NCBI GenBank assembly: GCA_013416795.1
Contig: RQSC01000024.1
Span: forward strand, 113,258 to 177,257
Origin: Prasinococcaceae sp. CCMP 1430
Taxonomy: Eukaryota > Plantae > Prasinodermophyta
DNA length: 64,000 nucleotides
Reading direction: 5' to 3'
The translations under genes were made by a program, and so were the position numbers. Below the pieces are notes generated by a model. That model ran no database searches and had not been told where the DNA came from. It worked only from the letters and a program-made list of their open reading frames with translations. Below, in pieces: positions 5,105 to 63,481 of this stretch. Each line of letters opens with the position of its first letter. Within the stretch, counting starts at the first letter, position 1.

Positions 5105-6001
5105 NNNNNNNNNNNNNNNNNNNNNNNNNNNNNNNNNNNNNNNNNNNNNNNNNNNNNNNNNNNNNNNNNNNNNNNNNNNNNNNNNNNNNNNNNNNNNNNN
5201 NNNNNNNNNNNNNNNNNNNNNNNNNNNNNNNNNNNNNNNNNNNNNNNNNNNNNNNNNNNNNNNNNNNNNNNNNNNNNNNNNNNNNNNNNNNNNNNNNNNN
5301 NNNNNNNNNNNNNNNNNNNNNNNNNNNNNNNNNNNNNNNNNNNNNNNNNNNNNNNNNNNNNNNNNNNNNNNNNNNNNNNNNNNNNNNNNNNNNNNNNNNN
5401 NNNNNNNNNNNNNNNNNNNNNNNNNNNNNNNNNNNNNNNNNNNNNNNNNNNNNNNNNNNNNNNNNNNNNNNNNNNNNNNNNNNNNNNNNNNNNNNNNNNN
5501 NNNNNNNNNNNNNNNNNNNNNNNNNNNNNNNNNNNNNNNNNNNNNNNNNNNNNNNNNNNNNNNNNNNNNNNNNNNNNNNNNNNNNNNNNNNNNNNNNNNN
5601 NNNNNNNNNNNNNNNNNNNNNNNNNNNNNNNNNNNNNNNNNNNNNNNNNNNNNNNNNNNNNNNNNNNNNNNNNNNNNNNNNNNNNNNNNNNNNNNNNNNN
5701 NNNNNNNNNNNNNNNNNNNNNNNNNNNNNNNNNNNNNNNNNNNNNNNNNNNNNNNNNNNNNNNNNNNNNNNNNNNNNNNNNNNNNNNNNNNNNNNNNNNN
5801 NNNNNNNNNNNNNNNNNNNNNNNNNNNNNNNNNNNNNNNNNNNNNNNNNNNNNNNNNNNNNNNNNNNNNNNNNNNNNNNNNNNNNNNNNNNNNNNNNNNN
5901 NNNNNNNNNNNNNNNNNNNNNNNNNNNNNNNNNNNNNNNNNNNNNNNNNNNNNNNNNNNNNNNNNNNNNNNNNNNNNNNNNNNNNNNNNNNNNNNNNNNN
6001 N

Positions 6002-26596: not shown

Positions 26597-28393
26597 ATGC
26601 GACGCCTCGCACGAGAAGGCCTGTGCGGGCTGCGTGCGGGTGCACGCGGAATTGCCGCCGCCGCCGCCGCCGCCCCCGCCGCTGGCGCGCAGGCGGCAGC
26701 CATCAGCGCCCCTGCCTCAGCTCCTCCGCAGCTGAGGATGAGTGTGGGCGTGGCGCCCTCCACGGCGATGCTCTCCAGCGCGGCGAGAAGGGAGCGCAGC
26801 GGCGACGGGTGTGGCGACAGTGGCGACCTCTTCTTGGTAGATGGTAGTTCTAACGGAGGCAACAGTGGCATTAGCAGCGCCGGCACAAGCACCGCCGCTG
26901 CCAGCAGCAGCGGTCAGGCGTCTTTTGGACTCGGTCGCATGGAGGCCTGGCCGAGTGGCTCGTCGAGAGCACCGCTTGCAGAGGCGCACGTGCCCCCGGC
27001 AAGCTGGTACACATCGGGCCAGGCGCACGCCGCCGAGTTGCGAGCTGTGTTCGCGGCGAGCTGGCAGCTGGCATGCCGCGCGTCGGCGCTTCGCAATCCG
27101 GGAACGTACGCGGCGGGGACCGCCGCGGACGGCACACGCTTCGTTGTCACGCGAACGGAGGACGGCGTGTTGCACGCATTCCACAACGCCTGCCGTCACA
27201 GGGGCGCGCCTGTGGCGCCGGAGGGCACCTGCGGCGTCGCTGAGCGCCTCGTTTGCCCATACCACGGTTGGGAGTACGACCTCGATGGCAGGCTCGCACG
27301 CGCGACGCGCCTCAGTGGCATTCGCGGGTTCTCAGCGAGCGATTACGGGCTGGTGCGTGTACCTAGTGCTGTGTACGGTGGTTTCGTCTTTGTGCACACC
27401 GGAGGAGCCCTGATAGGCAGCAGCTCCCAGGCAGTCGAAGGAAAAGAGGGGCAGAGCGCTGACGCTCAGGCTTGCGGCAGAGGCGCCACAGCGCCTGAAT
27501 TACCGCCGCCAACCGAGTGGTTTGGAAGCGCCGCTTCTGCGCTCATTTCCTCCGAGCGTGCAGCGACCGTGCCCTCGTACTGGACTGTGCTCGGACGAGA
27601 AGAGGCTGCCGACGCAGCACAAGATTTGATAGGGGGAGAGGATCACACTGATGGTCAAGGACGCGGTACCAGCGAGCGCGCCGTACGAAGGGTATGCCGC
27701 AGCCTGGGCGGCGATCTCGTGCACGTGGGAGCCAGCAGGGAGCAGCTGAATTGCAATTGGAAGGTCTTCGTCGAAAACTATCTCGATTCGGGCTACCACT
27801 TGAGGCACGCGCATCCCTCGCTTGCCGATGCGCTCGACCTGGGCACATATGTGTGCGCTATAAGCGCATGCGGGCGCAGCAGCGTGCAGAGAGTGCGCGC
27901 TGTCGCCGCCGTTGACCCGCGCGTGAGCTTGCACATGGGCACCGTCGCCGGCGGGGCCCGTGAGGACCGGAGCGACGGTGCTGGCAGTGACACCGGCGAT
28001 GCCGAAGGCGTGGTCGAAACTCGGGGGGCGACGCCGAAAGACAATGAAGTGACCTACGCGTTTTTTTACCCCAATTTGCTGGTCAGGTGGCACCTGAGCG
28101 GTGTGATGGAGGTCAACCTCGTCAGCCCCTTGACCCCCGAGAGCTGCTGTGTTCTCATTGACTGGTACGCCGAACCATCGCTGGCGAGCGACGCCGATGC
28201 GGTGAGCGGACTCATCGAAGCGTCGCATCGCGTTCAGGAGGAAAACGCAGCGCTCTGCGCGGGCGTGCAGCGCGGCTTGCGTTCGCCGGCGTGGCCACTC
28301 GGCCGCTACGCGCCGGCCGTCGAGGCTCCCGCCCACGCGTTCCATCTCGCGCTGCACGCGCAGCTGCGAGCCGCCGGGGCCGTCGACGCATGA
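26597..28393 (+). CDS. Rieske non-heme iron oxygenase, choline monooxygenase-like
   Basis: Rieske motifs FHNACRHRG and CPYHGWEYDLDG; catalytic NWKVFVENYLDSGYH...H; QEENAALCAGVQRGL. Confidence 0.85.
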   Translation: MRRLAREGLCGLRAGARGIAAAAAAAPAAGAQAAAISAPASAPPQLRMSVGVAPSTAMLSSAARRERSGDGCGDSGDLFLVDGSSNGGNSGISSAGTSTAAASSSGQASFGLGRMEAWPSGSSRAPLAEAHVPPASWYTSGQAHAAELRAVFAASWQLACRASALRNPGTYAAGTAADGTRFVVTRTEDGVLHAFHNACRHRGAPVAPEGTCGVAERLVCPYHGWEYDLDGRLARATRLSGIRGFSASDYGLVRVPSAVYGGFVFVHTGGALIGSSSQAVEGKEGQSADAQACGRGATAPELPPPTEWFGSAASALISSERAATVPSYWTVLGREEAADAAQDLIGGEDHTDGQGRGTSERAVRRVCRSLGGDLVHVGASREQLNCNWKVFVENYLDSGYHLRHAHPSLADALDLGTYVCAISACGRSSVQRVRAVAAVDPRVSLHMGTVAGGAREDRSDGAGSDTGDAEGVVETRGATPKDNEVTYAFFYPNLLVRWHLSGVMEVNLVSPLTPESCCVLIDWYAEPSLASDADAVSGLIEASHRVQEENAALCAGVQRGLRSPAWPLGRYAPAVEAPAHAFHLALHAQLRAAGAVDA

Positions 28394-30388: not shown

Positions 30389-30653
30389 NNNNNNNNNNNN
30401 NNNNNNNNNNNNNNNNNNNNNNNNNNNNNNNNNNNNNNNNNNNNNNNNNNNNNNNNNNNNNNNNNNNNNNNNNNNNNNNNNNNNNNNNNNNNNNNNNNNN
30501 NNNNNNNNNNNNNNNNNNNNNNNNNNNNNNNNNNNNNNNNNNNCGCCCGCCCGCCCGCGCTCCCTCCCGGGCCGCTCGCGCGAGCGGGGCGCCGGCCGCG
30601 CGCCCCTTGGGGCGGGTGGGGTGGGGTTAGTGGGGGGCGCGCCTCTCCGCGCA

Positions 30654-30683: not shown

Positions 30684-31191
30684 CGCGGTGTGTGTGTGTG
30701 GCAAGCGCGTGCCCGCGATGGCTGAGAAACGATCCGGTTTCGTCGCGCGCTCGCCAACAACCAATCCATCCATCCATCCATCCATCCATCCATCGAAGTT
30801 TTCATCCGCAGAACCCACCCAAGCGAGCGAAGTGCGGAAGTGGTGAAATCGGAGCTCGCCTCGCCTCCCTGCGAATGCCTGTTGGCGCGGGCGTGCGGGC
30901 GCGCGCGTGCGGGGCGGTGCGGCGGGTACCGAGGGCAGGGGGGGGGGAGGAGGGGGGCGGGCGGGAGGGGAGCGTCGAGGAGGAGGAGGCGGCGATCGCG
31001 ACGATCGCCGCCCTCCCTCGCACCCTCCCCCGCCTGCCCCTCCCTCGCGTCGCTGCCCGGCCCCCTACACCCCCCCGCCGCGCCGCGCTCTCGCCGCGCC
31101 NNNNNNNNNNNNNNNNNNNNNNNNGTCTTTCACGCAATGGCCGGGCGTGGCGTGTGCGCGGCGGGGAACGATCGCGCGAGGGGCGGCGGCC

Positions 31192-36403: not shown

Positions 36404-39400
36404 ATGAGACAGGAGGGCGGCGGCGGCGGCGACGACGCAGCGGTCTGGGTGTTTGCGTACGGCAGCCTGGTGAACGCCGACTCGGCGGCGGCGCAGCTGG
36501 GGGCGGGCGGCGCGGCGGCGCAGGCGGCGCGTCTGCGCACCGAGGCGGGCTACGCCCGAGCGTGGAGCTTCCGCTCGCCCACCGGCTTCACCGCTCTGGG
36601 CGTCGCGGCGGCGGTCGATGCAGGCGCCGCGCGGCCTATCAACGGCGCTCTGCTGCGCGTCTCGGCCGCTGATCTGCCCGCGCTCGCAGCGAGAGAGAGC
36701 GGTTACGCGCGCGTGGAGCTCGATGCGGCCCTCTTCGAGCGGCCCGGTGCCGATGCCGACTCTGACGATGGCGCGCCGCCGCGACCCTGGCCGCGCGAGC
36801 GCGTCCATATGTGGGTGCCGGACGAGCATGGCTGCCCCTCGGAGGACTGTCCCATCCTCCAGTCCTACGTTGATGTATGCCTCCAGGGGTTCCTCGCGCT
36901 CGGCGGCGAGGTCTTCGCGCGCGAGTTCGTCGAGAGTACTGGCGGATGGTGCGAGTGGTTCCTCAACGACTGCGTGCAGAGCCGTCGCCCCTGGCTGCAC
37001 CGCGGCAAGGCATACGCGGAGCTGGACCGCGTGCTCGCGCAGAGCGCCGGGGTGAGTGCGAGCCGCCACCCCGAGGAGTTCGCCGCGTTGCAGCTGCGGA
37101 GACACGTCTCCTCCAAGCCCGCGCCGCGCAGCGATGGCGGCACTGAGGGAGCGGCGGCGGCGCACGCTCATGCTGGGGCAGCGGTGCAGGCGCGTGGGCT
37201 ATGGGGCGTGCCTGCTAGGAACTCGCTCTTCACCGGTCGCGAGGGCCTCCTTGAGGCAATGCGGAGCAGGTTGTGCCTCTCCAAGGGCGACTCGGCGCTG
37301 CCGTCAGTCATGAAGGCGCTGGCGGTTGTTGGCATGGGTGGCGTTGGCAAATCGCAGACTGTGGCCGAGTACGTGACTCGCTCCGCTGCCTGTCGCGCAC
37401 AGCGCGATATTGCGTCACACGCGTCCGCTCCCTGCGGTAGCACACCGGTCGCGCCTTGTCGCATGACCTCCGAACGACGCTGACGCGCGCTCTCGGCCCC
37501 ACAGGTTCTGCCACCGGTGTTATCCCTCAAACTTCGACCTCGTGCTCTACATCCGTGCCGAGACTCAGCAATCCATGGTATCAGACCTGCACCGCTTTGC
37601 GCGTGACGCCGGCCTCGGCGGCGATGGCTCGAGCGCGGACGAGATGCTGGAGGCGCTCAAGGCATTTCTGTTCCGCTGTCGCCTACGCTGGATGCTCGTC
37701 TTCGATAATGCGCAGGACCGCTCCTTTGAAGCGCACGTGCCGCGCGGCGGTGTGGCGGGCGGCGCCATCGTGTACACGTCGCAGGTCGATCTGGAGCAGG
37801 GGCGCGGCGGGCGTGCGGCGGAAGTCCTGCGCGTCGACTGTTTCAGCGCAGGGGAGGCAGTCGCCTTTCTGGAGCGGGCGTCGGGAGCGGCGTCGGAAGC
37901 GGCTGCATCTGAACGACTCGTCGAAAGGCTGGGCGCGCTCCCGCTCGCCCTTGGTGTTGCAGCGGCGTACATGCAAGTGAGCGATTGCTCTGTCGAGCAG
38001 TACCTGAAGAAGCTCAATGCAGGGGCGACGCGCGATATCGGCGGTGCCAACGGCGTGGTCGAGGACTCGCTCTTGCTGTCGCTCGAGCGCATTGTCGCAT
38101 CCGAGCGCCACGGTGCCGCCGCCAGGGACGCGCTGCATGCACTTGCCTTCGCCTCTCCCGACGACATTACCAAGGTGTTGCTGGACAATCTTCTAGCTGC
38201 GCTGGACGCCGCTTCCGAAGAGTGCGCTGACGGCGACACGCCGGTGCGCGCGGCCATCAGCGCGCACTTGCCGATGTGTGCCGCTGTCGCGGCCGGGGCG
38301 TTTGCAACGACGTGGCTCGCATGGCCACACAAGGACGCGCGCGGGCGGCGGCGGCGGCTTGTGGCGGCCGCAGGCGCTGCGGTGGCTTCGGGGGCGGGGA
38401 TTGCGGGCTGGTTCTGCTGGACGTCAGCACGTCTGCCGTCGGCGCAGCTGCCGTCGGTAGCGAGCTCGGACGACCTTGCGGCTTCCTCGAGCGGCGGTGA
38501 TCGCGTTGACTCTGTCTGGGCGACCCTGAAGCGATTCAGCCTCCTATCTGTCAAGGCGCAGCGCGGTAGCTCTGCCTCTGGCTCGCTGCACCGCCTCCTT
38601 GGCGACACACTGCGGGCGAGATTGGGCGCGAGTGGTTCCAGGCGTAGCCTGCGCGCCATGGTCACAGCCCTCACTCGCGCGTGGAACTTCCACGAGGACG
38701 ATCAGAGCACTTTCTCTGCGGCAGCTGGCCTGTCTGATCATATAGTCACTGCCTCCTCGTTCGCGCTGCGCGGCAACGCGCTCGCTACCGCCGAGCTGCA
38801 GGAACTCGCGGTGCTCCTTGCGGAGGTTGCGGCAGCGATGCAACTGCTTTCCCGATTTGGAGAGGCGGAGCAAGCTCTGCTGCAGGCGCTGAACGCGCAC
38901 GCCAAGCTGATGCGAGGGGGTGACGTGCCCGCAAGTGTTCTGGAGGTCGCCCGCGACGAGGTGCTGCAGGGCCTCGCTGGCGACGGCGCACACCGCGACG
39001 CGCGCACAGACCTTGCCCTCGGCAAGATCGTCCTGCAGATGTCCCGAGTGCTGCGCTACAAGTCAGCCCTCGAGTCTTCCGCACGATGCGCTGCCTTTGC
39101 GCTCGGCCTGTTCCAGCAAGAGGACGGGACCTTTGTGTGCGGCGATGGTGCGTTGCTTGCGTCGCTCCACTTCGAGTCGGGCGTCATTGCAACCAAGCAA
39201 CGAAAGCTGGAGCGGGCGAAGGAGCTGCTTGAGGTCAGCCTTAGATACTCGACTGGCGCGCACCAGCGCGCCAAGTGCAACCACCAGTTGGGGGTGGTTG
39301 CACTCTGCCAGCGCCCCAGACCGGACACAGCAACGGCAGAGCGGCTACTCAAGCGCTCGCTGCAACTCGAGGAAGGCCGTGGCGTGGAGGCCAGCCGCAC

Positions 39401-40331
39401 GGCGCGCGGCGCCACGCTGCAGCAGCTCGGCCGGGTGTACACGCGCGCGGGTGACTTTGGAAAGGCTCGCTCGGCGCTGGAGCTGGCGCTGGAGCTTGCC
39501 AGTGGTGCGACCGATTCGCAGAAGGCAGCCTCGCACACGCTCAACGTCGCTTCGGTGCGAGAGGCATTGGCAGCGTTGGCGGCAGATCAGCACAACTGGC
39601 CAGAGGCAAGGCTTCAACTGCGCCACGCGCTGGAGGTTCAAATTTCTGTGTGGGGACCAGTGCACATACATGTTGCGCGCACGCTCGGACGATTCGCCGA
39701 CGTCGAACGCGCAGCCGGCTCGCCGGGTATGGCATACGCGGCGCTGCTTGAGCAGCGTGCGCTGGCCCTCAAGCTCTGCCCGGCGCTCGAGCGGCAAGGC
39801 CAGCTGAGCGATGCGGAGGGCTTGTCGGAGGCATCCTTGGCTGGTGCCCGCGAGCTGCAGCGAGCGTGCGCGCAGCTGCGAAGCTGCGCACGGGCCCGCG
39901 GCGACAAGGCGTCGGCGTCGGCGTTCGGTGAGGAGGAGAAGCGCGCGCGGCGCCTGCTGGCGTTGCCACATCGGCGCGCAGAATCAGTAGCTGGCGGGCC
40001 GTGCGTGCGCGCGCGCGACCCGCAGCTGGTCGAGGCAGTTTGCGCGGCGCGTGCGGCGGCGAGGGCCGCCGCACGCGCCGCCACGAAGGCTGCGAGCGCA
40101 GTGCCGTCGCTTGAGGTGGAAGCTATCGTCGAAGCGCTCGAGGCGGCCCTCGCGGATGCGGCCCAGCATGGCGACAGCAACGAGACCCAGCGCGCCGCCC
40201 TGCTCAGCACTGGCGGAGCGCTCGCGCGTGCGCTGCGTGGCGCGAAGGGCGATACCGACGCATTGCTGGCCGCTTGCGACGGCGCGCGCGGCCGGCTCCG
40301 GGACGTCGGGGTGGCCGTGACGGACCGCTGA
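36404..40331 (+). CDS. NLR-like STAND protein: GGCT-like domain - NB-ARC - TPR - C-terminal helical domain; exons 36404-37368 and 37505-40331
   Basis: VFAYGSL (GGCT); P-loop GMGGVGKS; Walker B MLVFDNA; GALPLAL; SLHRL; TPR-like repeats. The intron GA|GTACGT...CTGAC...CACAG|G restores the frame (TVAEFCHR). Confidence 0.85.
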
Positions 40332-44866: not shown

Positions 44867-45063
44867 TTCATATTCAGATATATTTTAACCATGGGAGAGT
44901 CATTTGAATGTCGCAAAAGGGGATCGCAACGCTGCGCGTGCGGGCGCGCGCGTGCGCTCGCTCGCGTATCGACTCTCATATCACGAGCCTGACTCTCCCG
45001 TTAGTATATCAGACCTCGCATGCCTTGTAGATCCTGTACTGCTGGGTGCCTCTCCGTCAACGC

Positions 45064-45132
45064 CCTCCGCGGTCTCCCGCTCGTCCACGCCGTGGACGGT
45101 GGCGATGGCCGCGTCGCTCATCCGCTGGCCCA
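45064..45132. repeat. 69-bp direct repeat, copy A (copy B at 48418-48486)
   Basis: 65/69 identity by manual alignment. Confidence 0.9.
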
Positions 45133-45453
45133 CGCGGTAGACGGCTCCGTCCGAGAGCCCGACGAAGTGCTCACATGTACCCACGGGCGACATTTGCACC
45201 GATATCGACATCAAATCGCATGCGCCGAATGCCCCGAATGCAGTTTGATGTATTCGCGGTCGCGACCGATGTGACAGCGGCGCCTTTTTTGGCGCGCGCC
45301 CGCGGCCGTGGCGGGGCGCCACTGTGCGCGCGCTGGCAGCCCCCCCCCCCACACCCCCCACCCGACAACGACAGCCTCTCCCGAGTCAGCCGCCGCACCG
45401 GACGCGCGCGCGCGCACACACGCACGCGTGCTTACGCATTCGTGCAGTCGACG

Positions 45454-47757
45454 ATGGCCGACGGCGCCGCCGCGGGCGGCAGCAGCGGCGGCGCCGCCGG
45501 CGGCGCCCCTCGGCCTTCGGTATCTGCATCGACGAAGAGCGCGCGCCATGCGCTGCTTCTGGCCGTTCAGGCGGTGAGCGTCAACGACGCCGAGCTGCGC
45601 AAGGCGCAAGAGGATCGCGACGCGATACGGAAGGGGGTTATTATGGGTTGGAAAGCCTTTTTGTGGCTGCGAGAGCGTTCTCGCTATCGTCGCAGGTATC
45701 TGGGGCCGCGGGAGCAAGACGGCCGCCAGTGCCGCCGAGCCGGTGACGCAGGCAAAAGCAGCGGCTATCGCATCGGCGGCTCTTTGGACGGCTCAGGCAG
45801 CACCGACGGCCCTCGCGCCACGTCGGCGGAGCGTGCGCGCCGGGCGCTGCTCCTGGTGGCGCAGGTGATGGGCGTCAGCGCTGCCGCCGTGCGCGAGGCG
45901 CGAGCGGAGTGCGAGCTCGCCGCGATGGACGCATGGCGCTTGCCTGCGACCTCGCGCGCAGCCTTAGCTGGCGACATCGACCGCCTCCGGCTGTTGCTTG
46001 AGGCGGGCGCCGACACGGAACAAGCAGACGGCAACGGCTGGACTCCGTTGATCTGGGCAGTGGGCTCTGGCGAAGGTACGGGTTGCCTCCGACTGCTGCT
46101 CGAGGCGGGCGCCGACACGGACAAGACCACGCGTGTACATGGGACTGCGCTCATGGTCGCGGCCGACGGAGGCAACGCAGACTGCGTCAAGACGTTGCTC
46201 GACGCTGGCGCCGAGGCGGACAAGGCCAGGTCCGACGGGTCGTCTGCGCTGATGATCGCGGCCGACAAAGGCAACGCAGACTGCGTCAAGACTTTGCTCG
46301 ACGCAGGCGCCGATGCGGACAAGATCACGCGTGATGGCTGGACTACGCTGATGTTCGCGGCCAAAAGAGGCTTCAATGACTGCGTCAAGACGCTGCTCGA
46401 CGCAGGCGCCGACGCGAACAAGTCCATCGGCCGCGTCGTCGGATGGACTGCGCTGATGCGCGCGGCCCAAGAGGGCCACACTGACTGCGTCAAGACGCTG
46501 CTCGACGCAGGCGCCAACGCGGACAAGACCAGATACGATGGATGGACTGCACTGATGGCAGCGGCCGAAGGTGGCCGCACTGACTGCGTCAAGACGCTGC
46601 TCGCCGCTGGCGCCGACGTGGACAAGGCCAGCGACGACGGGTCGTCTGCGCTGGTGGTTGCGGCCAAAAGAGGCTGCACTGACTGCGTCAAGACGCTGCT
46701 CGACGCAGGCGCCGACGCGGGCAAGACCAGGACCGATGGCAGGACTGCGCTGATGATCGCGGCCGACAAGGGCTTCACTGACTGCGTCAAGACGCTGCTC
46801 GACGCAGGCGTCGACACGGATAAGACCAGGTACGATGGATGGACTGCGCTGATGCTCGCGGCCCAAAATGGCAGCGCAGACTGCGTCAAGACGCTGCTCG
46901 ACGCAGGCGCCGATGCGGGCCATGCTAGCGGCCACGACGGATGGACTGCGCTGATGCTCGCGGCCGACAAAGGCTTCACTGACTGCGTCAAGACGTTGCT
47001 CGGGGCGGGCGCCGACGCGGATAAGGCCTGCGACCACGACGGATGGACTGCGCTGATGCTCGCGGCCCACATTGGCAGCGCAGACTGCGTCAAGACGCTG
47101 CTCGACGCAGGCGCCGACACGGAACAGGCCGAGGTGGACGGATGGACTGCGCTGATGTTCGCGGCCCAAAATGGCAGCGCAGACTGCGTCAAGACGCTGC
47201 TCGCTGCTGGCGCCGACGCGAACAAGGCCAGCGACCTCCACGGATGGACTGCGCTGATGCTCGCGGCCGACAAAGGCTTCACTGACTGCGTCAAGACGTT
47301 GCTCGGGGCGGGCGCCGACGCGGAAAAGGTCAGGGATGACGACGGATGGACTGCGCTGATGCTCGCGGCCGAATTTGGCTTCACTGACTGCGTCAAGGCG
47401 TTGCTCGACGCAGGCGCCGATGTGGACAAGGCTGAGGAGGACGGATGGGGGACTGCGCTGATGTTCGCGGCCCAAAATGGCAGCGCAGACTGCGTCAAGG
47501 CGTTGCTCGACGCAGGCGCCGACGCCGACAACACCAGGCCCGATGGATGGACTGCGCTGATGATCGCGGCCCAAAAAGGCAACGCAGACAGCGTCCGAGC
47601 GTTGCTCAGGGCGGGCGTCGACGTCACCATTGCTACGGATGCCGGCCTGACGGCACTCAAGATCGCCGAGACGCCGAGACGCCCCAACGCCGAGGTCGTC
47701 GCCCTGCTGCGCGCCGCGCAGCCGCCGCTGCCGTACGATGATTCCAATGACGAGTGA
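45454..47757 (+). CDS. Ankyrin-repeat protein with about 17-18 repeats
   Basis: Repeated DGWTALMxAAxxGxxDCVKTLLDAGAD. Confidence 0.92.
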   Translation: MADGAAAGGSSGGAAGGAPRPSVSASTKSARHALLLAVQAVSVNDAELRKAQEDRDAIRKGVIMGWKAFLWLRERSRYRRRYLGPREQDGRQCRRAGDAGKSSGYRIGGSLDGSGSTDGPRATSAERARRALLLVAQVMGVSAAAVREARAECELAAMDAWRLPATSRAALAGDIDRLRLLLEAGADTEQADGNGWTPLIWAVGSGEGTGCLRLLLEAGADTDKTTRVHGTALMVAADGGNADCVKTLLDAGAEADKARSDGSSALMIAADKGNADCVKTLLDAGADADKITRDGWTTLMFAAKRGFNDCVKTLLDAGADANKSIGRVVGWTALMRAAQEGHTDCVKTLLDAGANADKTRYDGWTALMAAAEGGRTDCVKTLLAAGADVDKASDDGSSALVVAAKRGCTDCVKTLLDAGADAGKTRTDGRTALMIAADKGFTDCVKTLLDAGVDTDKTRYDGWTALMLAAQNGSADCVKTLLDAGADAGHASGHDGWTALMLAADKGFTDCVKTLLGAGADADKACDHDGWTALMLAAHIGSADCVKTLLDAGADTEQAEVDGWTALMFAAQNGSADCVKTLLAAGADANKASDLHGWTALMLAADKGFTDCVKTLLGAGADAEKVRDDDGWTALMLAAEFGFTDCVKALLDAGADVDKAEEDGWGTALMFAAQNGSADCVKALLDAGADADNTRPDGWTALMIAAQKGNADSVRALLRAGVDVTIATDAGLTALKIAETPRRPNAEVVALLRAAQPPLPYDDSNDE

Positions 47758-55531: not shown

Positions 55532-57701
55532 TCACTCATCGATTGGCAGCATTTCCTGGAACGAGGGCTTGTTCGAAGAGAGGAAGATGTACGCTGCGGT
55601 GTGGTAGAAAATTGAGAGCTTGGTTTGCACGAGGGAGGACCGACCCAGGCTCGTGTCACGGAAGCCGAACCGCACGAGCACGTCCTCGCCCGTCGCCAGG
55701 TCGGCGGGGCCCTCAGTCTCGAATGCGAGCCCTTCGAACTCGTTGATGCAGAGCGCCTCGTGGCAGTGCCGCACGAGCGAGACGGCGGGCAGCCACTTGA
55801 ACGCGAGCGGCACATTGTCCGCCTTGATGTATAGGCCACCAAACACAATGTTGATAAGCATCACTGCCGGGGCGAGGGCATTCCCCACCTCCGGAGAGGG
55901 CGCTATGGCCCCTACCGCCAGGCCGAGTGCCGAGGCCGTCACGCTCTCTAGTGTTGACACCACCGCGAATTTGACGAATCGGAGCGGACGCCCGTGCAGG
56001 CCGCTGCACGGGTAAACCACCGAGCTGAAGATGAACGGAAACAGGGCCGACATGGGCACCTCAGCCAGCAACTTAGCGACAAAGTACGGCCCCACCTCGT
56101 ACGAACGCGCGACTCGCTCCCGGCTGACGACTGCCCGCTCGCGTGTGAAAGCCGTGACTGTCTTGGTGATGCTCGCCATCGCTGTGTTAATCGCGCACAC
56201 CTGCAGTAGGCCCATGCGGTCTTGAATCCGGCTCTGCGCGTTGCCCATGCGCCAGTAGATCATGCCAAAGACGATTGCCGAATTGAGTAGCGTGGCCACA
56301 CGCACGCGGATGGTTGCCTTGTCACGCGTCACTTGCCGCAGGCTGCGCGCGAAAAGGCAGCGAAACTGCGTCCATGGGCCAGCGCGTGCCATCCGCGCAC
56401 CAAACGCGCGCGAGGCCTCGCGCGCGGCCGCACCCTTCTTGGCGGCACCCAGCGGCGACGCTGCCTGCGCCGCCGCATTCACGAGCGCACGTACGCGCGC
56501 CTGCGATGCGCGCTCCACGTCGGCGTCTGACACGTCGATGGATATGGCGTCCACAACCCATTCGGCGGGGTTGAGCGGCGCTCCCAGAAAGGAGCTGTCG
56601 CCGACGTCGGCATCGAGGTGCCGCCTGAGCGTCTTCACTGCTGCTTCGGCAGGCCCGCTATAGGCGACACCCAGCGCGCTGACGAGTGTCAGGTCGTCGA
56701 GCTGCGCGAAGATGGATGCCCTCGGCTGATGGATAGTCACAAGTACCGTGACGCCGCTGCTCGCGAGCTCCTTGAGAACGCCCATGACTTTGTCCGCCTG
56801 GAACGCGTCCAGGCCCGTCGTGGGTTCGTCCGCAAAAATGACGGAAGGGTCGGATAGCAGCTCGCACGCTATGGCGACGCGCTTGCGCTCGCCTCCAGAC
56901 ACGCCTCCGCTCTTGAGGCCATCACCCATCGGCGAGTCGAGGCACGCGCGCAGTCCCATGCGCGAGACCACGTTGTCAACGCGCCCCTGCCGCTCGGTCT
57001 CGCTCATAGCGCGCGGCAGTCTCAGGCGCGCGGCCATCGCAAGCGTCTCCCGTACGGAGAGCTGGGAGTAAAAGACATCTTTCTGCTGCACGTACGCAAT
57101 GCGGGGGCGGTGCTCGCGCACGTCGACTCCGTTGGCGAGCACGCGCCCGCGGAGCACCACGCGCTTCGACGCGGGGACCTGGCCGGCTATGGCGTTCATC
57201 AGAGTGCTCTTGCCGGCTGTGTTTCGGTCGTGGAGCAGCAGCGTCGAGGGGGAGTCAGCCGCGTCCATGCAGGGTGGGCGGCGGAGCTGCCAGCCGCGCG
57301 CGGGCGGCGTGTCACGGATGTGCGCGCCCATCCGTGCGCATGGGTGCGACGCACACGCGCGCGCAGGGACACGCACCGCCGGACGGCCCCATGATCGCGT
57401 GCAGGCGGCCGGGCGCGGCCACGCCGCGCGCCCCACCGAGCACCGTGCGCGTCTCTTCTGGCTCCCCCTTGCGCTTGATGGTGATCACTGCACTGATCCC
57501 CTCCCACTCGAGGGTGACCGGCACGTGTGCGGAGAGCGTCTCCGCGCCATCCCCACCACCACTGCTGCCGCGCGCCCTGCCTGCCACTGCCCTTGCAACG
57601 CCCACGACCGCGGCCGCCGCGCATCCCGCCGCCTGCACGGGCGGCGGCGCGGCAAGCGCCGCCGCGCTCACCGCGAGCTTCAGCAGCGCGCCCGCGCCCA
57701 T
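55532..57701 (-). CDS. ABCG (White-type) half transporter; intron 57376-57217
   Basis: Spliced Walker A GPSGAGKST, signature VSGGERKR, Walker B ADEPTTGLD, C-terminal ABC2 membrane domain. Confidence 0.93.
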
Positions 57702-63069: not shown

Positions 63070-63481
63070 GNNNNNNNNNNNNNNNNNNNNNNNNNNNNNN
63101 NNNNNNNNNNNNNNNNNNNNNNNNNNNNNNNNNNNNNNNNNNNNNNNNNNNNNNNNNNNNNNNNNNNNNNNNNNNNNNNNNNNNNNNNNNNNNNNNNNNN
63201 NNNNNNNNNNNNNNNNNNNNNNNNNNNNNNNNNNNNNNNNNNNNNNNNNNNNNNNNNNNNNNNNNNNNNNNNNNNNNNNNNNNNNNNNNNNNNNNNNNGG
63301 AGGCGGAGGCGGAGGCGGAGACAAGTCCGGTGGCGCGAGGTGGTGGTGCGGGCGGGCGCAGGGGCGACGGGGGGGGGAGGCAGGCCTGGCCGGCGAGCGC
63401 CACACGTCGCGCGGGGCGGCCCCTCCTCGCCTCCCCGGCTGCGGCGCGCGCGCGCGCCGCGCGCACGCGTGGGGGGCTGAC

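Follow-up and report, generated by a model that had tools for sequence, protein, structure and literature searches.

An expressed NB-ARC-TPR protein of the NLR type with a GGCT-fold N-terminal domain in the alga Prasinococcaceae sp. CCMP 1430

Results

A GGCT-headed NLR-type protein

We analysed a window of 64,000 nucleotides from Prasinococcaceae sp. CCMP 1430 (contig RQSC01000024.1, positions 113,258 to 177,257) and found that it encodes an expressed protein of the NLR type with a head of which the searchable literature gave no description. We are almost certain of the architecture and of its expression: a single two-exon gene specifies a STAND/NLR-type protein that combines a GGCT-fold domain, an NB-ARC module, a hydrophobic hairpin, a TPR array and a C-terminal helical tail (Table 1). 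The best explanation of this protein, to which we give a probability of about 0.6, is a STAND/NLR switch with a GGCT-fold enzyme as its output, for which glutathione would be the likeliest substrate and which might lead to cell arrest or death.

Table 1. Features of the gene and its product (positions are those of the window).
Feature	Position	Strand	Description	Basis
Exon 1	36404..37368	+	residues 1-321 and a further two bases, from codon 322; carries the GGCT-fold domain, the linker and Walker A	ORF, sequence, splice in RNA-derived contigs
Intron	37369..37504	+	136 nt, GT..AG; donor GT 37369-70, acceptor AG 37503-04	RNA-derived contigs X1 and X2; missing in ortholog contig L001
Exon 2	37505..40331	+	residues 322-1263 and stop; remaining NB-ARC, hairpin insert, TPR array, C-terminal helices	
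GGCT-fold enzyme domain	36443..37111	+	residues 14-236: beta-barrel core (about 14-140) and conserved helical extension (PILQSYVD, GW, LND, SRRPW)	
YGSL motif	36458..36469	+	residues 19-22 (Y19-G20-S21-L22); substrate-binding loop signature of GGCT/AIG2 enzymes	alignment
Glu98 in RESGY	36695..36697	+	candidate catalytic general acid/base	invariant in 59 sequences
Linker	37112..37204	+	conserved RHPEEF motif	alignments A1, A3
NB-ARC/AP-ATPase module	37205..38819	+	interrupted by intron and hairpin insert	motif alignment, NF040586, ortholog model
Walker A GMGGVGKS	37331-37354	+		motif alignment
Walker B MLVFDN	37692-37709	+		motif alignment
Sensor-1 position VYTSQ	37770-37784	+	Gln in place of the family's Arg	motif alignment
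GLPL motif GALPLAL	37932-37952	+		motif alignment
Hydrophobic helical hairpin	38268..38420	+	residues 577-627, inside winged-helix domain; candidate membrane anchor	hydropathy, model
Hairpin parts	38268-38324; 38325-38357; 38358-38420	+	helix 1; basic loop PHKDARGRRRR; helix 2	
MHD-like SLHRLL	38583-38600	+		motif alignment
TPR array	38877..39989	+	approximate bounds; Pfam TPR_12/TPR_10/TPR_2 matches at 39330-39773	
Extreme C-terminal motif ACDxxRxxLRDxGxxVxD	40272..40328	+	conserved; A2 consensus ends ACDxLRxxLRxxGxxVxD	

One gene spans the N-terminal domain and the NB-ARC module

The gene occupies 36404-40331 of the forward strand, with an ATG at 36404, a stop codon at 40329-40331 and a CDS of 3792 nt that encodes 1263 aa and contains a single terminal stop. 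The motifs VWVFAYGSL, LAARESGY, PILQSYVDVCLQG and FLND..SRRPW were all present in plus-strand ORFs where a preliminary description had placed them. Because exon 1 is 965 nt long, base 37505 completes the split codon and the frame is kept from there to the stop, whereas retention of the intron results in a translation stop at 37481-37483. The NCBIfam profile NF040586 continues across the joint, its positions 1-42 matching the end of exon 1 and positions 45-279 the start of exon 2.

The preliminary description had proposed a single gene with one phase-consistent intron and had named RNA across 37368/37505 as a check. Contigs of two runs from the same organism (X1 and X2, labelled 'RNA?' since their RNA origin was guessed) omit exactly 37369-37504. 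The X1 contig, 992 nt long and free of mismatches, consists of 36760-37368 followed by 37505-37887 and therefore joins the second half of the N-domain to the NB-ARC module. The stretch 36404-36760 is covered by no RNA contig, and the full span of 36404-40331 is found on no single one. The contig carrying the ortholog (L001, 76% identical) is colinear and lacks exactly the 136 intron nucleotides, and a metatranscriptome contig (X3, 37158-37407) reads into the intron unspliced. The proposed splice is thus the one carried by the RNA-derived contigs, and the single-gene model holds. Transcript depth of the gene in culture transcriptomes was steady and moderate. A neighbouring gene is ABCG7-like and has green-lineage affinity.

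The head adopts the GGCT fold and retains catalytic-type residues

The AF2 model of the head domain (pLDDT 90.8, pTM 0.87) matched human GGCT both in Foldseek (E 2.5e-8, TM 0.68 by target) and in VIA (Z 14.2, with 159 of the 169 human GGCT residues aligned), and all of the top 22 VIA matches had the GGCT fold. VIA Z scores were 14.2 for GGCT (C7orf24), 10.7 for ChaC1/ChaC2, 9.2 for AIG2/AIG2-like and 8.6 for GGACT. In the ESM Atlas, residues 8-236 reached a TM of 0.77 to bacterial GGCT clusters. The N-terminal GGCT fold that had been proposed from the letters is therefore borne out by the structural comparison, with its catalytic-type residues intact.

To describe these residues we used 59 aligned head relatives, which are 30-45% identical to the domain of the 1263-aa protein (75% for the ortholog). 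G20 is nearly invariant (90% or more) in the 59 sequences and invariant in 10 fused-clade domains, and the YGSL columns align with VYGSI of the AIG2-like protein 2jqv. The profile column of Glu98 was aligned to Glu82 of GGACT, in LDDFED; that GGACT-type Glu is catalytic, as Oakley et al. reportedly described in 2010. It is quite likely that the N-domain acts as a catalytically active output module.

Curated family models recognised the head at a distance. On the 1263-aa protein, Pfam GGACT (PF06094) scored 18.5 bits, under its gathering score of 22.8, and Pfam ChaC (PF04752) gave no match. The nearest named family is NF049903 (FTN_0599 ChaC type), to which the head is a distant subfamily relative (26.2 bits, E 5.1e-6, profile positions 67-213 of 266, cut-off of 480 not reached). 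Because the GGACT and NF049903 scores are far under the family cut-offs, substrate specificity is not transferable from either. Stand-alone relatives of the head match NF049903 at 1e-17 to 1e-26. We conclude that the head belongs to the bacterial 'Francisella-ChaC-like' GGCT subfamily; the earlier placement among bacterial stand-alone enzymes agrees with the NF049903 and ESM Atlas matches and with the prokaryotic relatives.

An NB-ARC module with an inserted hairpin precedes a TPR array

The Walker A, Walker B, GLPL and MHD-type motifs are all present and in order. The model of the 76%-identical ortholog (pLDDT 83.6) has an NBD-HD1-WHD fold, with fold matches to 6mfv, Apaf-1, CED-4, ZAR1, NRC2 and Avs3. 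NF040586 scored 119 bits on the 1263-aa protein (range 119-155) against a cut-off of 300, so the protein is not an equivalog. With Pfam NB-ARC (PF00931, cut-off 23.5), relatives P0009 and P0041 scored 32.2 and 25.6 bits, whereas the two exon pieces gave no match, since intron and insert break up the domain. The sensor-1 position reads TSQ in the 1263-aa protein and its ortholog, and TSR or TTR in the other 31 of 33 aligned sequences. From sequence, Gln at this position may alter ATP hydrolysis, and it counts against the best explanation.

In 58 of 71 long members, hydropathy analysis identified at least one hydrophobic segment of the hairpin type C-terminal to the P-loop, and the hairpin is conserved by property and not by sequence. 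The ortholog model places two helices here with low confidence, and the basic loop fits awkwardly with a simple two-pass model in which both flanks are cytosolic. A conserved membrane-type hairpin within a winged-helix domain is unusual among NB-ARC proteins.

In the TPR array, TPR_12 scored 34.5 bits and passed its gathering score of 30.1, and the corresponding region of the ortholog model forms helical repeats with fold matches to the TPRs of LGN, KLC and OGT. The order of NB-ARC and then TPR after the head, as the preliminary description had it, is consistent with the motif order, the ortholog-model fold and the TPR_12 score.

Every domain is under purifying selection

Compared with the ortholog, dN/dS was 0.16 for the whole gene, 0.11 for the TPRs and 0.08 for the helical extension of the head, values that come from one ortholog pair with a dS of about 1, near saturation. 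Purifying selection on every domain argues that the whole protein is functional; being present throughout, it also leaves an immunity role unproven. Sensors of pathogen receptors are expected to diversify, and no diversifying selection was seen on the TPRs in this one pair with dS near saturation. The conserved TPRs and the one-to-one ortholog pair fit a sensor with a housekeeping role no less well than an immune receptor.

The fusion is common in marine algae

The family came to light when the head was searched exhaustively with phmmer and the ortholog was used as the query of a region-restricted search. The ortholog is a one-to-one counterpart in a related species (76% identity to the 1263-aa protein), and a relative 28% identical (P0002) has the same fusion on a low-GC eukaryotic contig. 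The fusion layout was found in 64 of the 150 best 50%-identity cluster representatives, diatom "hypothetical proteins" among them. There were 26 full-length fusion proteins, one a Thalassiosira entry, and precomputed Pfam annotation recorded GGACT or ChaC in none of these 26. Fused head domains formed one well-supported clade (SH-aLRT 99) in an unrooted tree without taxon labels.

Prokaryotic relatives were short stand-alone enzymes in 68 of 68 cases, kin to the Francisella periplasmic ChaC. A pattern-based scan of these 68 loci with a 10-sequence alignment, which distant fusions could escape, found no bacterial fusion of GGCT and NB-ARC. The architecture search that had been suggested thus recovered the fusion in eukaryotes only. 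Since the fusion is seen only in eukaryotes and stand-alone relatives occur in marine bacteria, the data are compatible with horizontal transfer; from an unrooted tree without taxon labels, neither donor nor direction can be named.

In the searchable literature, outside which most subscription journals lie, we found no description of a GGCT-headed NLR. On targeted reading, the NLR censuses PMC7145615, PMC4986451 and PMC4759884 and the Ectocarpus paper PMC3341825 describe no GGCT-NB-ARC fusion. Because the head is under the Pfam threshold and unannotated in all 26 full-length relatives found, current NLR censuses would score such proteins as 'NB-ARC-TPR with no N-terminal domain'. The novelty claimed for the architecture therefore stands in that no description was found, but the protein is not a one-off: it belongs to a large marine-algal family. 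We conclude that the fusion is common in marine algae, yet unannotated and uncharacterised.

Discussion

A proposed mechanism

By analogy with NB-ARC-TPR proteins, the TPR array would keep the ATPase ADP-bound and off until a ligand binds, and nucleotide exchange and oligomerisation would then set the N-terminal enzyme free or bring its copies together. This enzyme would cleave a gamma-glutamyl amide through cyclisation to 5-oxoproline, possibly at a membrane where the hairpin anchors the protein. Glutathione would be the most likely substrate, and its loss could collapse the thiol redox buffer, leading to cell arrest or death. No requirement for oligomerisation is known in the activity of GGCT-type enzymes, which makes the step that couples the NB-ARC module to the enzyme a conjecture. 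Single parts of this mechanism are less secure: the odds that glutathione is the substrate are somewhat below even, and a role in immunity or cell death rather than homeostasis, suggested by analogy, has close to an even chance.

Alternative functions

The protein could instead be a homeostatic STAND regulator that tunes the turnover of glutathione or other gamma-glutamyl compounds (redox, cysteine/sulphur economy, stress acclimation) when its TPRs sense an endogenous metabolite. We regard this as possible but rather unlikely. Purifying selection over the whole gene, TPRs included, the one-to-one ortholog in a related species and the steady, moderate transcript depth in culture transcriptomes are all in keeping with it, as is the nutritional role of the characterised relative, Francisella ChaC (PMC7340319). 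However, the family has many divergent marine-algal members, as one would expect from expanded receptor families, and in the nearest NB-ARC-TPR relatives the place of the head is taken by effectors of death or immunity.

An active head might also work on a substrate other than glutathione: on gamma-glutamyl-epsilon-lysine isopeptides in the manner of GGACT, on gamma-glutamyl amino acids in the manner of GGCT, or on a protein tag or small molecule that is gamma-glutamylated. In fold the head is closest to GGCT and not to ChaC (Z 14.2 versus 10.7), Pfam ChaC gives no match and GGACT alone a weak one, and residue-level sequence alignments were obtained only to AIG2-like and GGACT chains. We nevertheless find this doubtful, because the nearest named sequence family is of the FTN_0599 ChaC type and glutathione is the most abundant gamma-glutamyl compound of the cytosol.

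If the head were not an enzyme but served to bind a ligand, as an adaptor or as a decoy, the protein's output would lie elsewhere, for example in membrane perturbation by the hairpin. The retention of the hydrophobic hairpin in most members and the weak scores against curated GGCT models are consistent with this. In contrast, YGS(L/I) and the Glu are conserved over 59 divergent sequences, with Glu98 invariant, and the helical extension is strongly constrained (dN/dS 0.08), a pattern that at the sequence level is typical of a maintained active site and renders a non-enzymatic head improbable. Finally, the notion that a stand-alone GGCT gene and an adjacent NB-ARC-TPR gene were wrongly fused is already refuted: prokaryote-style public gene calls do reduce the locus to a 359-444 aa piece (the P0003 cluster) and no RNA contig covers 36404-36760, but exon 1 contains the Walker A loop and exon 2 the remainder of the ATPase, an RNA-derived contig extends in spliced form over 36760-37887, NF040586 runs unbroken over the joint, and the fusion is uninterrupted in the ortholog and in dozens of relatives.

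Significance

Known NLR/STAND heads include pore-forming, TIR-NADase, nuclease, protease, patatin and PNP domains. If a switch with a GGCT-fold enzyme output is the correct reading, the head would add the destruction of the thiol buffer to receptor outputs. The fate of phytoplankton cells under virus or stress challenge is tightly tied to glutathione redox state, and to our knowledge the upstream triggers are not known. The GGCT-NB-ARC-TPR family, present in transformable diatoms, is a concrete, testable candidate trigger. More tentatively, and with low odds in its entirety, we propose a large, as yet unannotated, eukaryote-specific NLR-like class in marine algae (green lineage, diatoms) that would be tethered to a membrane by the hairpin, would when activated kill or arrest cells through glutathione destruction and would have taken its head from marine-bacterial periplasmic ChaC-type enzymes. 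Such a class would bring a new NLR output chemistry and would tie receptor activation directly, at the molecular level, to redox-controlled cell fate in phytoplankton.

Comparison with known systems

Fungi and actinobacteria have similar NB-ARC-TPR NLR-like proteins, one of them the 'FxSxx-COOH system TPR protein' of NF040586, which aligned to the 1263-aa protein over profile positions 1-279. These proteins share the order of NB-ARC and then TPR_10/TPR_12 behind a variable N-terminal module, and so do the NB-ARC-TPR proteins of the brown alga Ectocarpus (PMC3341825). At the N-terminal position the nearest ESM Atlas NB-ARC-TPR clusters (Ascomycota, Actinomycetota) have HET, patatin and TIR. NB-ARC-TPR proteins have HET, patatin, TIR, PNP_UDP or HeLo there, whereas the 1263-aa protein has a GGCT-fold enzyme and, in addition, the hydrophobic hairpin in its winged-helix domain.

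Apaf-1, CED-4, plant CNLs (ZAR1, NRC2, Sr35) and the archaeal STAND-TPR protein 6mfv share the NBD-HD1-WHD fold and the Walker A/B, GLPL and MHD-like motifs. Apaf-1, CED-4 and plant CNLs differ in having a WD40 or LRR sensor, where the 1263-aa protein has TPRs as in 6mfv, and a CARD or CC head, where it has an enzymatic one; its sensor-1 Arg is also replaced by Gln.

Among enzymes, Francisella ChaC (FTN_0599; NF049903) shares the GGCT subfamily and part of the C-terminal helical extension (profile 67-213). Genetic evidence supports its role in glutathione catabolism, and it supports growth on glutathione (PMC7340319). It is a membrane-anchored periplasmic stand-alone protein, unlike the fused head described here, and with a score of 26 bits against a cut-off of 480 its function is not transferable. 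Human GGCT (C7orf24), ChaC1/ChaC2, GGACT and plant AIG2/AIG2-like proteins have the same fold, YGS motif and catalytic-type Glu, but the head is 11-23% identical to them, carries about 90 extra helical residues and is fused to a STAND ATPase. RipAY of Ralstonia solanacearum, a type III effector cited in PMC7340319, sets a precedent in host-pathogen conflict: it is a ChaC-like enzyme of the GGCT fold that degrades glutathione once host thioredoxin has activated it. RipAY is a pathogen effector switched on by the binding of thioredoxin, whereas the 1263-aa protein is of the receptor type and carries its own fused ATPase.

GGCT fold and catalytic signature of the head domain

The window protein, a 1263-aa product of 36404-40331, was described preliminarily as an NLR-like receptor with a gamma-glutamylcyclotransferase (GGCT)-fold domain at its N-terminus. 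The only Pfam match of this head (residues 14-236) was to GGACT, below threshold (18.5 vs 22.8 bits), and the NCBIfam model of Francisella FTN_0599 ChaC, NF049903, matched weakly (E 5e-6). With residues 1-250 as query, an exhaustive phmmer search of 1.84 billion cluster representatives gave 1004 relatives at E<1e-3, of which 282 reached E<1e-10. When the head was aligned with 59 relatives, R52, G81, E98, Y101, P150, D157, W182 and D189 were invariant, and F17 and G20 were among the nearly invariant residues. We used this alignment for an AlphaFold2 model (pLDDT 90.8, pTM 0.87), and the top Foldseek match of the model was human GGCT (E 2.5e-8, TM 0.68 by target), ahead of ChaC from yeast and human, YkqA, AIG2-like proteins and GGACT. 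A comparison with Swiss-Prot models agreed. VIA-align placed 159 of the 169 residues of human GGCT on the head (Z 14.2), and all 22 of its top matches had the GGCT fold. The 230-residue head including its conserved C-terminal helical extension was also compared with Pseudomonadota 'gamma-glutamylcyclotransferase' clusters, giving a TM of 0.77 and an rmsd of 2.6 Å. In profile-to-PDB alignments, the YGS motif of the family fell on VYGSI of the AIG2-like protein 2jqv, and its invariant Glu fell on Glu82 of GGACT (LDDFED), reportedly found to be the catalytic residue by Oakley and colleagues in 2010. From the fold matches and the motif and Glu alignment, we conclude that the head has the GGCT fold, as first described, with an intact catalytic signature.

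The head and the NB-ARC ATPase are encoded by one spliced gene

Two long + strand ORFs lie in different frames between 36404 and 40331, and splicing yields a 3792-nt CDS with one, terminal, stop. The preliminary description had joined the GGCT-like domain to the NB-ARC module by one intron, and three independent lines confirmed the junction 37368>37505. First, NF040586, an NCBIfam model of an NB-ARC-TPR protein, aligns across the junction: its positions 1-42 match the 52 residues that end exon 1, and its positions 45-279 match the 235 residues that open exon 2. Second, two runs of the same organism contain the exact joint (GT..AG) in contigs labelled 'RNA?', a label that marks a guessed kind of data. 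A single 992-nt RNA-labelled contig consists of 36760-37368 and 37505-37887, with zero mismatches. Third, an ortholog of 1307 aa (76% identity, 100% coverage) is encoded on a Logan contig (L001, 4794 nt) that is colinear with the window gene, minus exactly the intron. Because exon 1 encodes the Walker A loop and exon 2 the remaining ATPase, the GGCT and NB-ARC parts cannot be two separate genes.

Contig coverage ends at ~36165 upstream of the gene and restarts at ~40758 downstream, and these gaps indicate that the gene is its own transcription unit. Among the same-organism 'RNA?' contigs, none covered 36404-36760. RNA of the window is also present in marine metatranscriptomes. One contig (37158-37407), from marine run X3, is unspliced and extends 39 nt into the intron, reflecting either unspliced pre-mRNA or DNA carry-over. 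Intron retention would lead to a translation stop at 37481-37483, downstream of the Walker A loop.

All regions of the protein are maintained. Against the ortholog, dN/dS was 0.16 overall, with 0.06 in NBD-HD1, 0.08 in the helical extension of the head and 0.11 in the TPRs, and with higher values in the GGCT core (0.29) and the hairpin insert (0.32). Nothing in this one pair (dS ~1) pointed to a fast-evolving sensor.

Features of the gene and of the remaining window
Feature	Position	Strand	Detail
Helical extension of head			PILQSYVD...GW..LND..SRRPW
Intron	GT at 37369, AG ending 37504	+	136 nt, joins both ORFs
Sensor-1 VYTSQ with Gln	37770-37784	+	33-sequence alignment
Hydrophobic two-helix hairpin	38268-38420		residues 577-595, PHKDARGRRRR loop, 607-627
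C-terminal motif ACDxxRxxLRDxGxxVxD	40272-40328		family-wide, preceded by helical region
903-aa ORF	45046-47754	+	nearly all ankyrin repeats (Ank_2 E 6e-171, 10 stretches)
598-aa ORF	26597-28390	+	Rieske [2Fe-2S] and ring-hydroxylating oxygenase alpha-subunit catalytic domain
ABCG7-like half-transporter	55535-57436	-	one ORF
N runs (gaps or masked)	5105-6001, 30389-30543, 31101-31124, 63071-63298

Elsewhere in the window, the N runs account for an apparent GC dip at 4-6 kb and for six-frame ORFs at that place. The named best hits of the ABCG7-like ORF were only Viridiplantae (land plants, Closterium, Chlamydomonas and trebouxiophytes), at 44-51% identity. These hits put the genome in the green lineage and, with the marine metatranscriptome RNA, identify the host as a GC-rich green-lineage alga from the sea.

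NB-ARC module, hairpin insert and TPRs

An alignment of 33 family members, reaching from just upstream of the P-loop to the C-terminus, contained the canonical motifs in order: Walker A GLGGVGKT, Walker B LLVFDN, RNBS-B/sensor-1 TSR/TTR, GLPLAL and the MHD-type SMHRLL. At sensor-1, the window protein and its ortholog have Gln where the 31 other sequences all have Arg, a lineage-specific change that may affect ATP hydrolysis. Pfam NB-ARC scored above threshold in two relatives (P0009 and P0041), and TPR_12 did so in the window protein. A model of ortholog residues 300-1307 (pLDDT 83.6, pTM 0.72) matched 6mfv (archaeal STAND-TPR), Apaf-1, CED-4, ZAR1, NRC2, Sr35 and Avs3. An NB-ARC module and a TPR region thus follow the head, as had been read from the DNA.

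An insert of ~110 residues lies between two winged-helix elements of the NB-ARC. It contains two hydrophobic helices of ~19-21 residues each, with a short loop rich in Arg and Lys between them. Of 71 long family members, 58 have one or more hydrophobic segments of this kind downstream of the P-loop, and the hairpin is conserved in its character but not in its sequence. It looks like a membrane hairpin and is a candidate anchor.

The fusion is conserved across its family and seen only in eukaryotes

The fusion is conserved across the family. Among the best 150 cluster representatives of the head (50% identity), 64 carried a GxGGxGK[ST] loop, at a median of 285 residues downstream of the YGS motif; 36 of the 64 were 800 aa or longer. 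A region-restricted search gave 26 full-length relatives of 803-1626 aa. Their precomputed Pfam annotation included TPR and, in many, NB-ARC; GGACT or ChaC appeared in none of the 26. They include 'hypothetical protein ACHAXR_011824 [Thalassiosira sp. AJA248-18]', and many relatives are diatoms. The relatives P0002 and P0009 lie on eukaryotic contigs, P0002 on one with a GC of 0.36 and an adjoining bZIP gene, and P0009 on one with a GC of 0.68 and Tim17, EDR2_C and SOUL genes nearby.

In a head-domain tree (n=142), all 71 NLR-linked heads fell inside one clade (SH-aLRT 99), and the 43 heads outside it belonged to stand-alone or unclassified proteins lacking a P-loop. Among the search hits, the stand-alone relatives that were sampled matched NF049903 at 1e-17 to 1e-26; some had Sec or TAT signals, and one adjoins HipA/HTH genes. 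A prokaryotic scan with one genome per species yielded 68 loci, mostly from marine Alpha- and Gammaproteobacteria, all of them short ORFs (133-469 aa) and none with a P-loop. From the single NLR-linked clade and the short prokaryotic ORFs without P-loops, we conclude that the GGCT-NB-ARC fusion, seen solely in eukaryotes, is probably of single origin. That the head belongs to a subfamily otherwise made up of bacterial stand-alone enzymes, a resemblance noted at the outset, was borne out by the NF049903 matches, the Pseudomonadota clusters and the 68 loci, and horizontal transfer of the head is plausible.

The stand-alone relatives in bacteria cluster in genera that are marine and often live with algae or invertebrates (Roseibium, Stappia, Pseudovibrio, Breoghania, Saccharospirillum and Agarivorans), which would suit gene exchange with algae. 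Other fusions of the GGCT subfamily were also observed (P0004, P0148 and P0150). P0004 (725 aa) has a class I SAM methyltransferase domain after GGCT, and some of these fusions have unannotated regions of ~250 aa ahead of the GGCT domain.

Proposed function and relation to known NB-ARC proteins

Following established NB-ARC/STAND behaviour, the TPRs would sense a ligand, the ATPase would then switch and oligomerise, and the N-terminal GGCT-fold module would be the output. HET, patatin or TIR heads occupy the same position in the nearest NB-ARC-TPR clusters. The expected chemistry would be cleavage of a gamma-glutamyl amide to give 5-oxoproline. Glutathione is the leading candidate substrate, because by sequence the head's closest named relative is the ChaC of Francisella, an enzyme that supports the catabolism of glutathione (PMC7340319). 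Scores to named families are too low to transfer specificity, and GGCT itself is the best fold match. The main rival to an immune role is a homeostatic one.

In the literature searched, we found no paper linking a GGCT, AIG2 or ChaC domain to an NLR/STAND protein, in agreement with the preliminary description, which named no GGCT effector among those known in such proteins. In the literature found, diatom NB-ARC-TPR proteins appear merely as NB-ARC-TPR. NB-ARC-TPR proteins are a well-known class, and we therefore conclude that the category itself is not new, and that what is new is the GGCT head, the hairpin being unusual.
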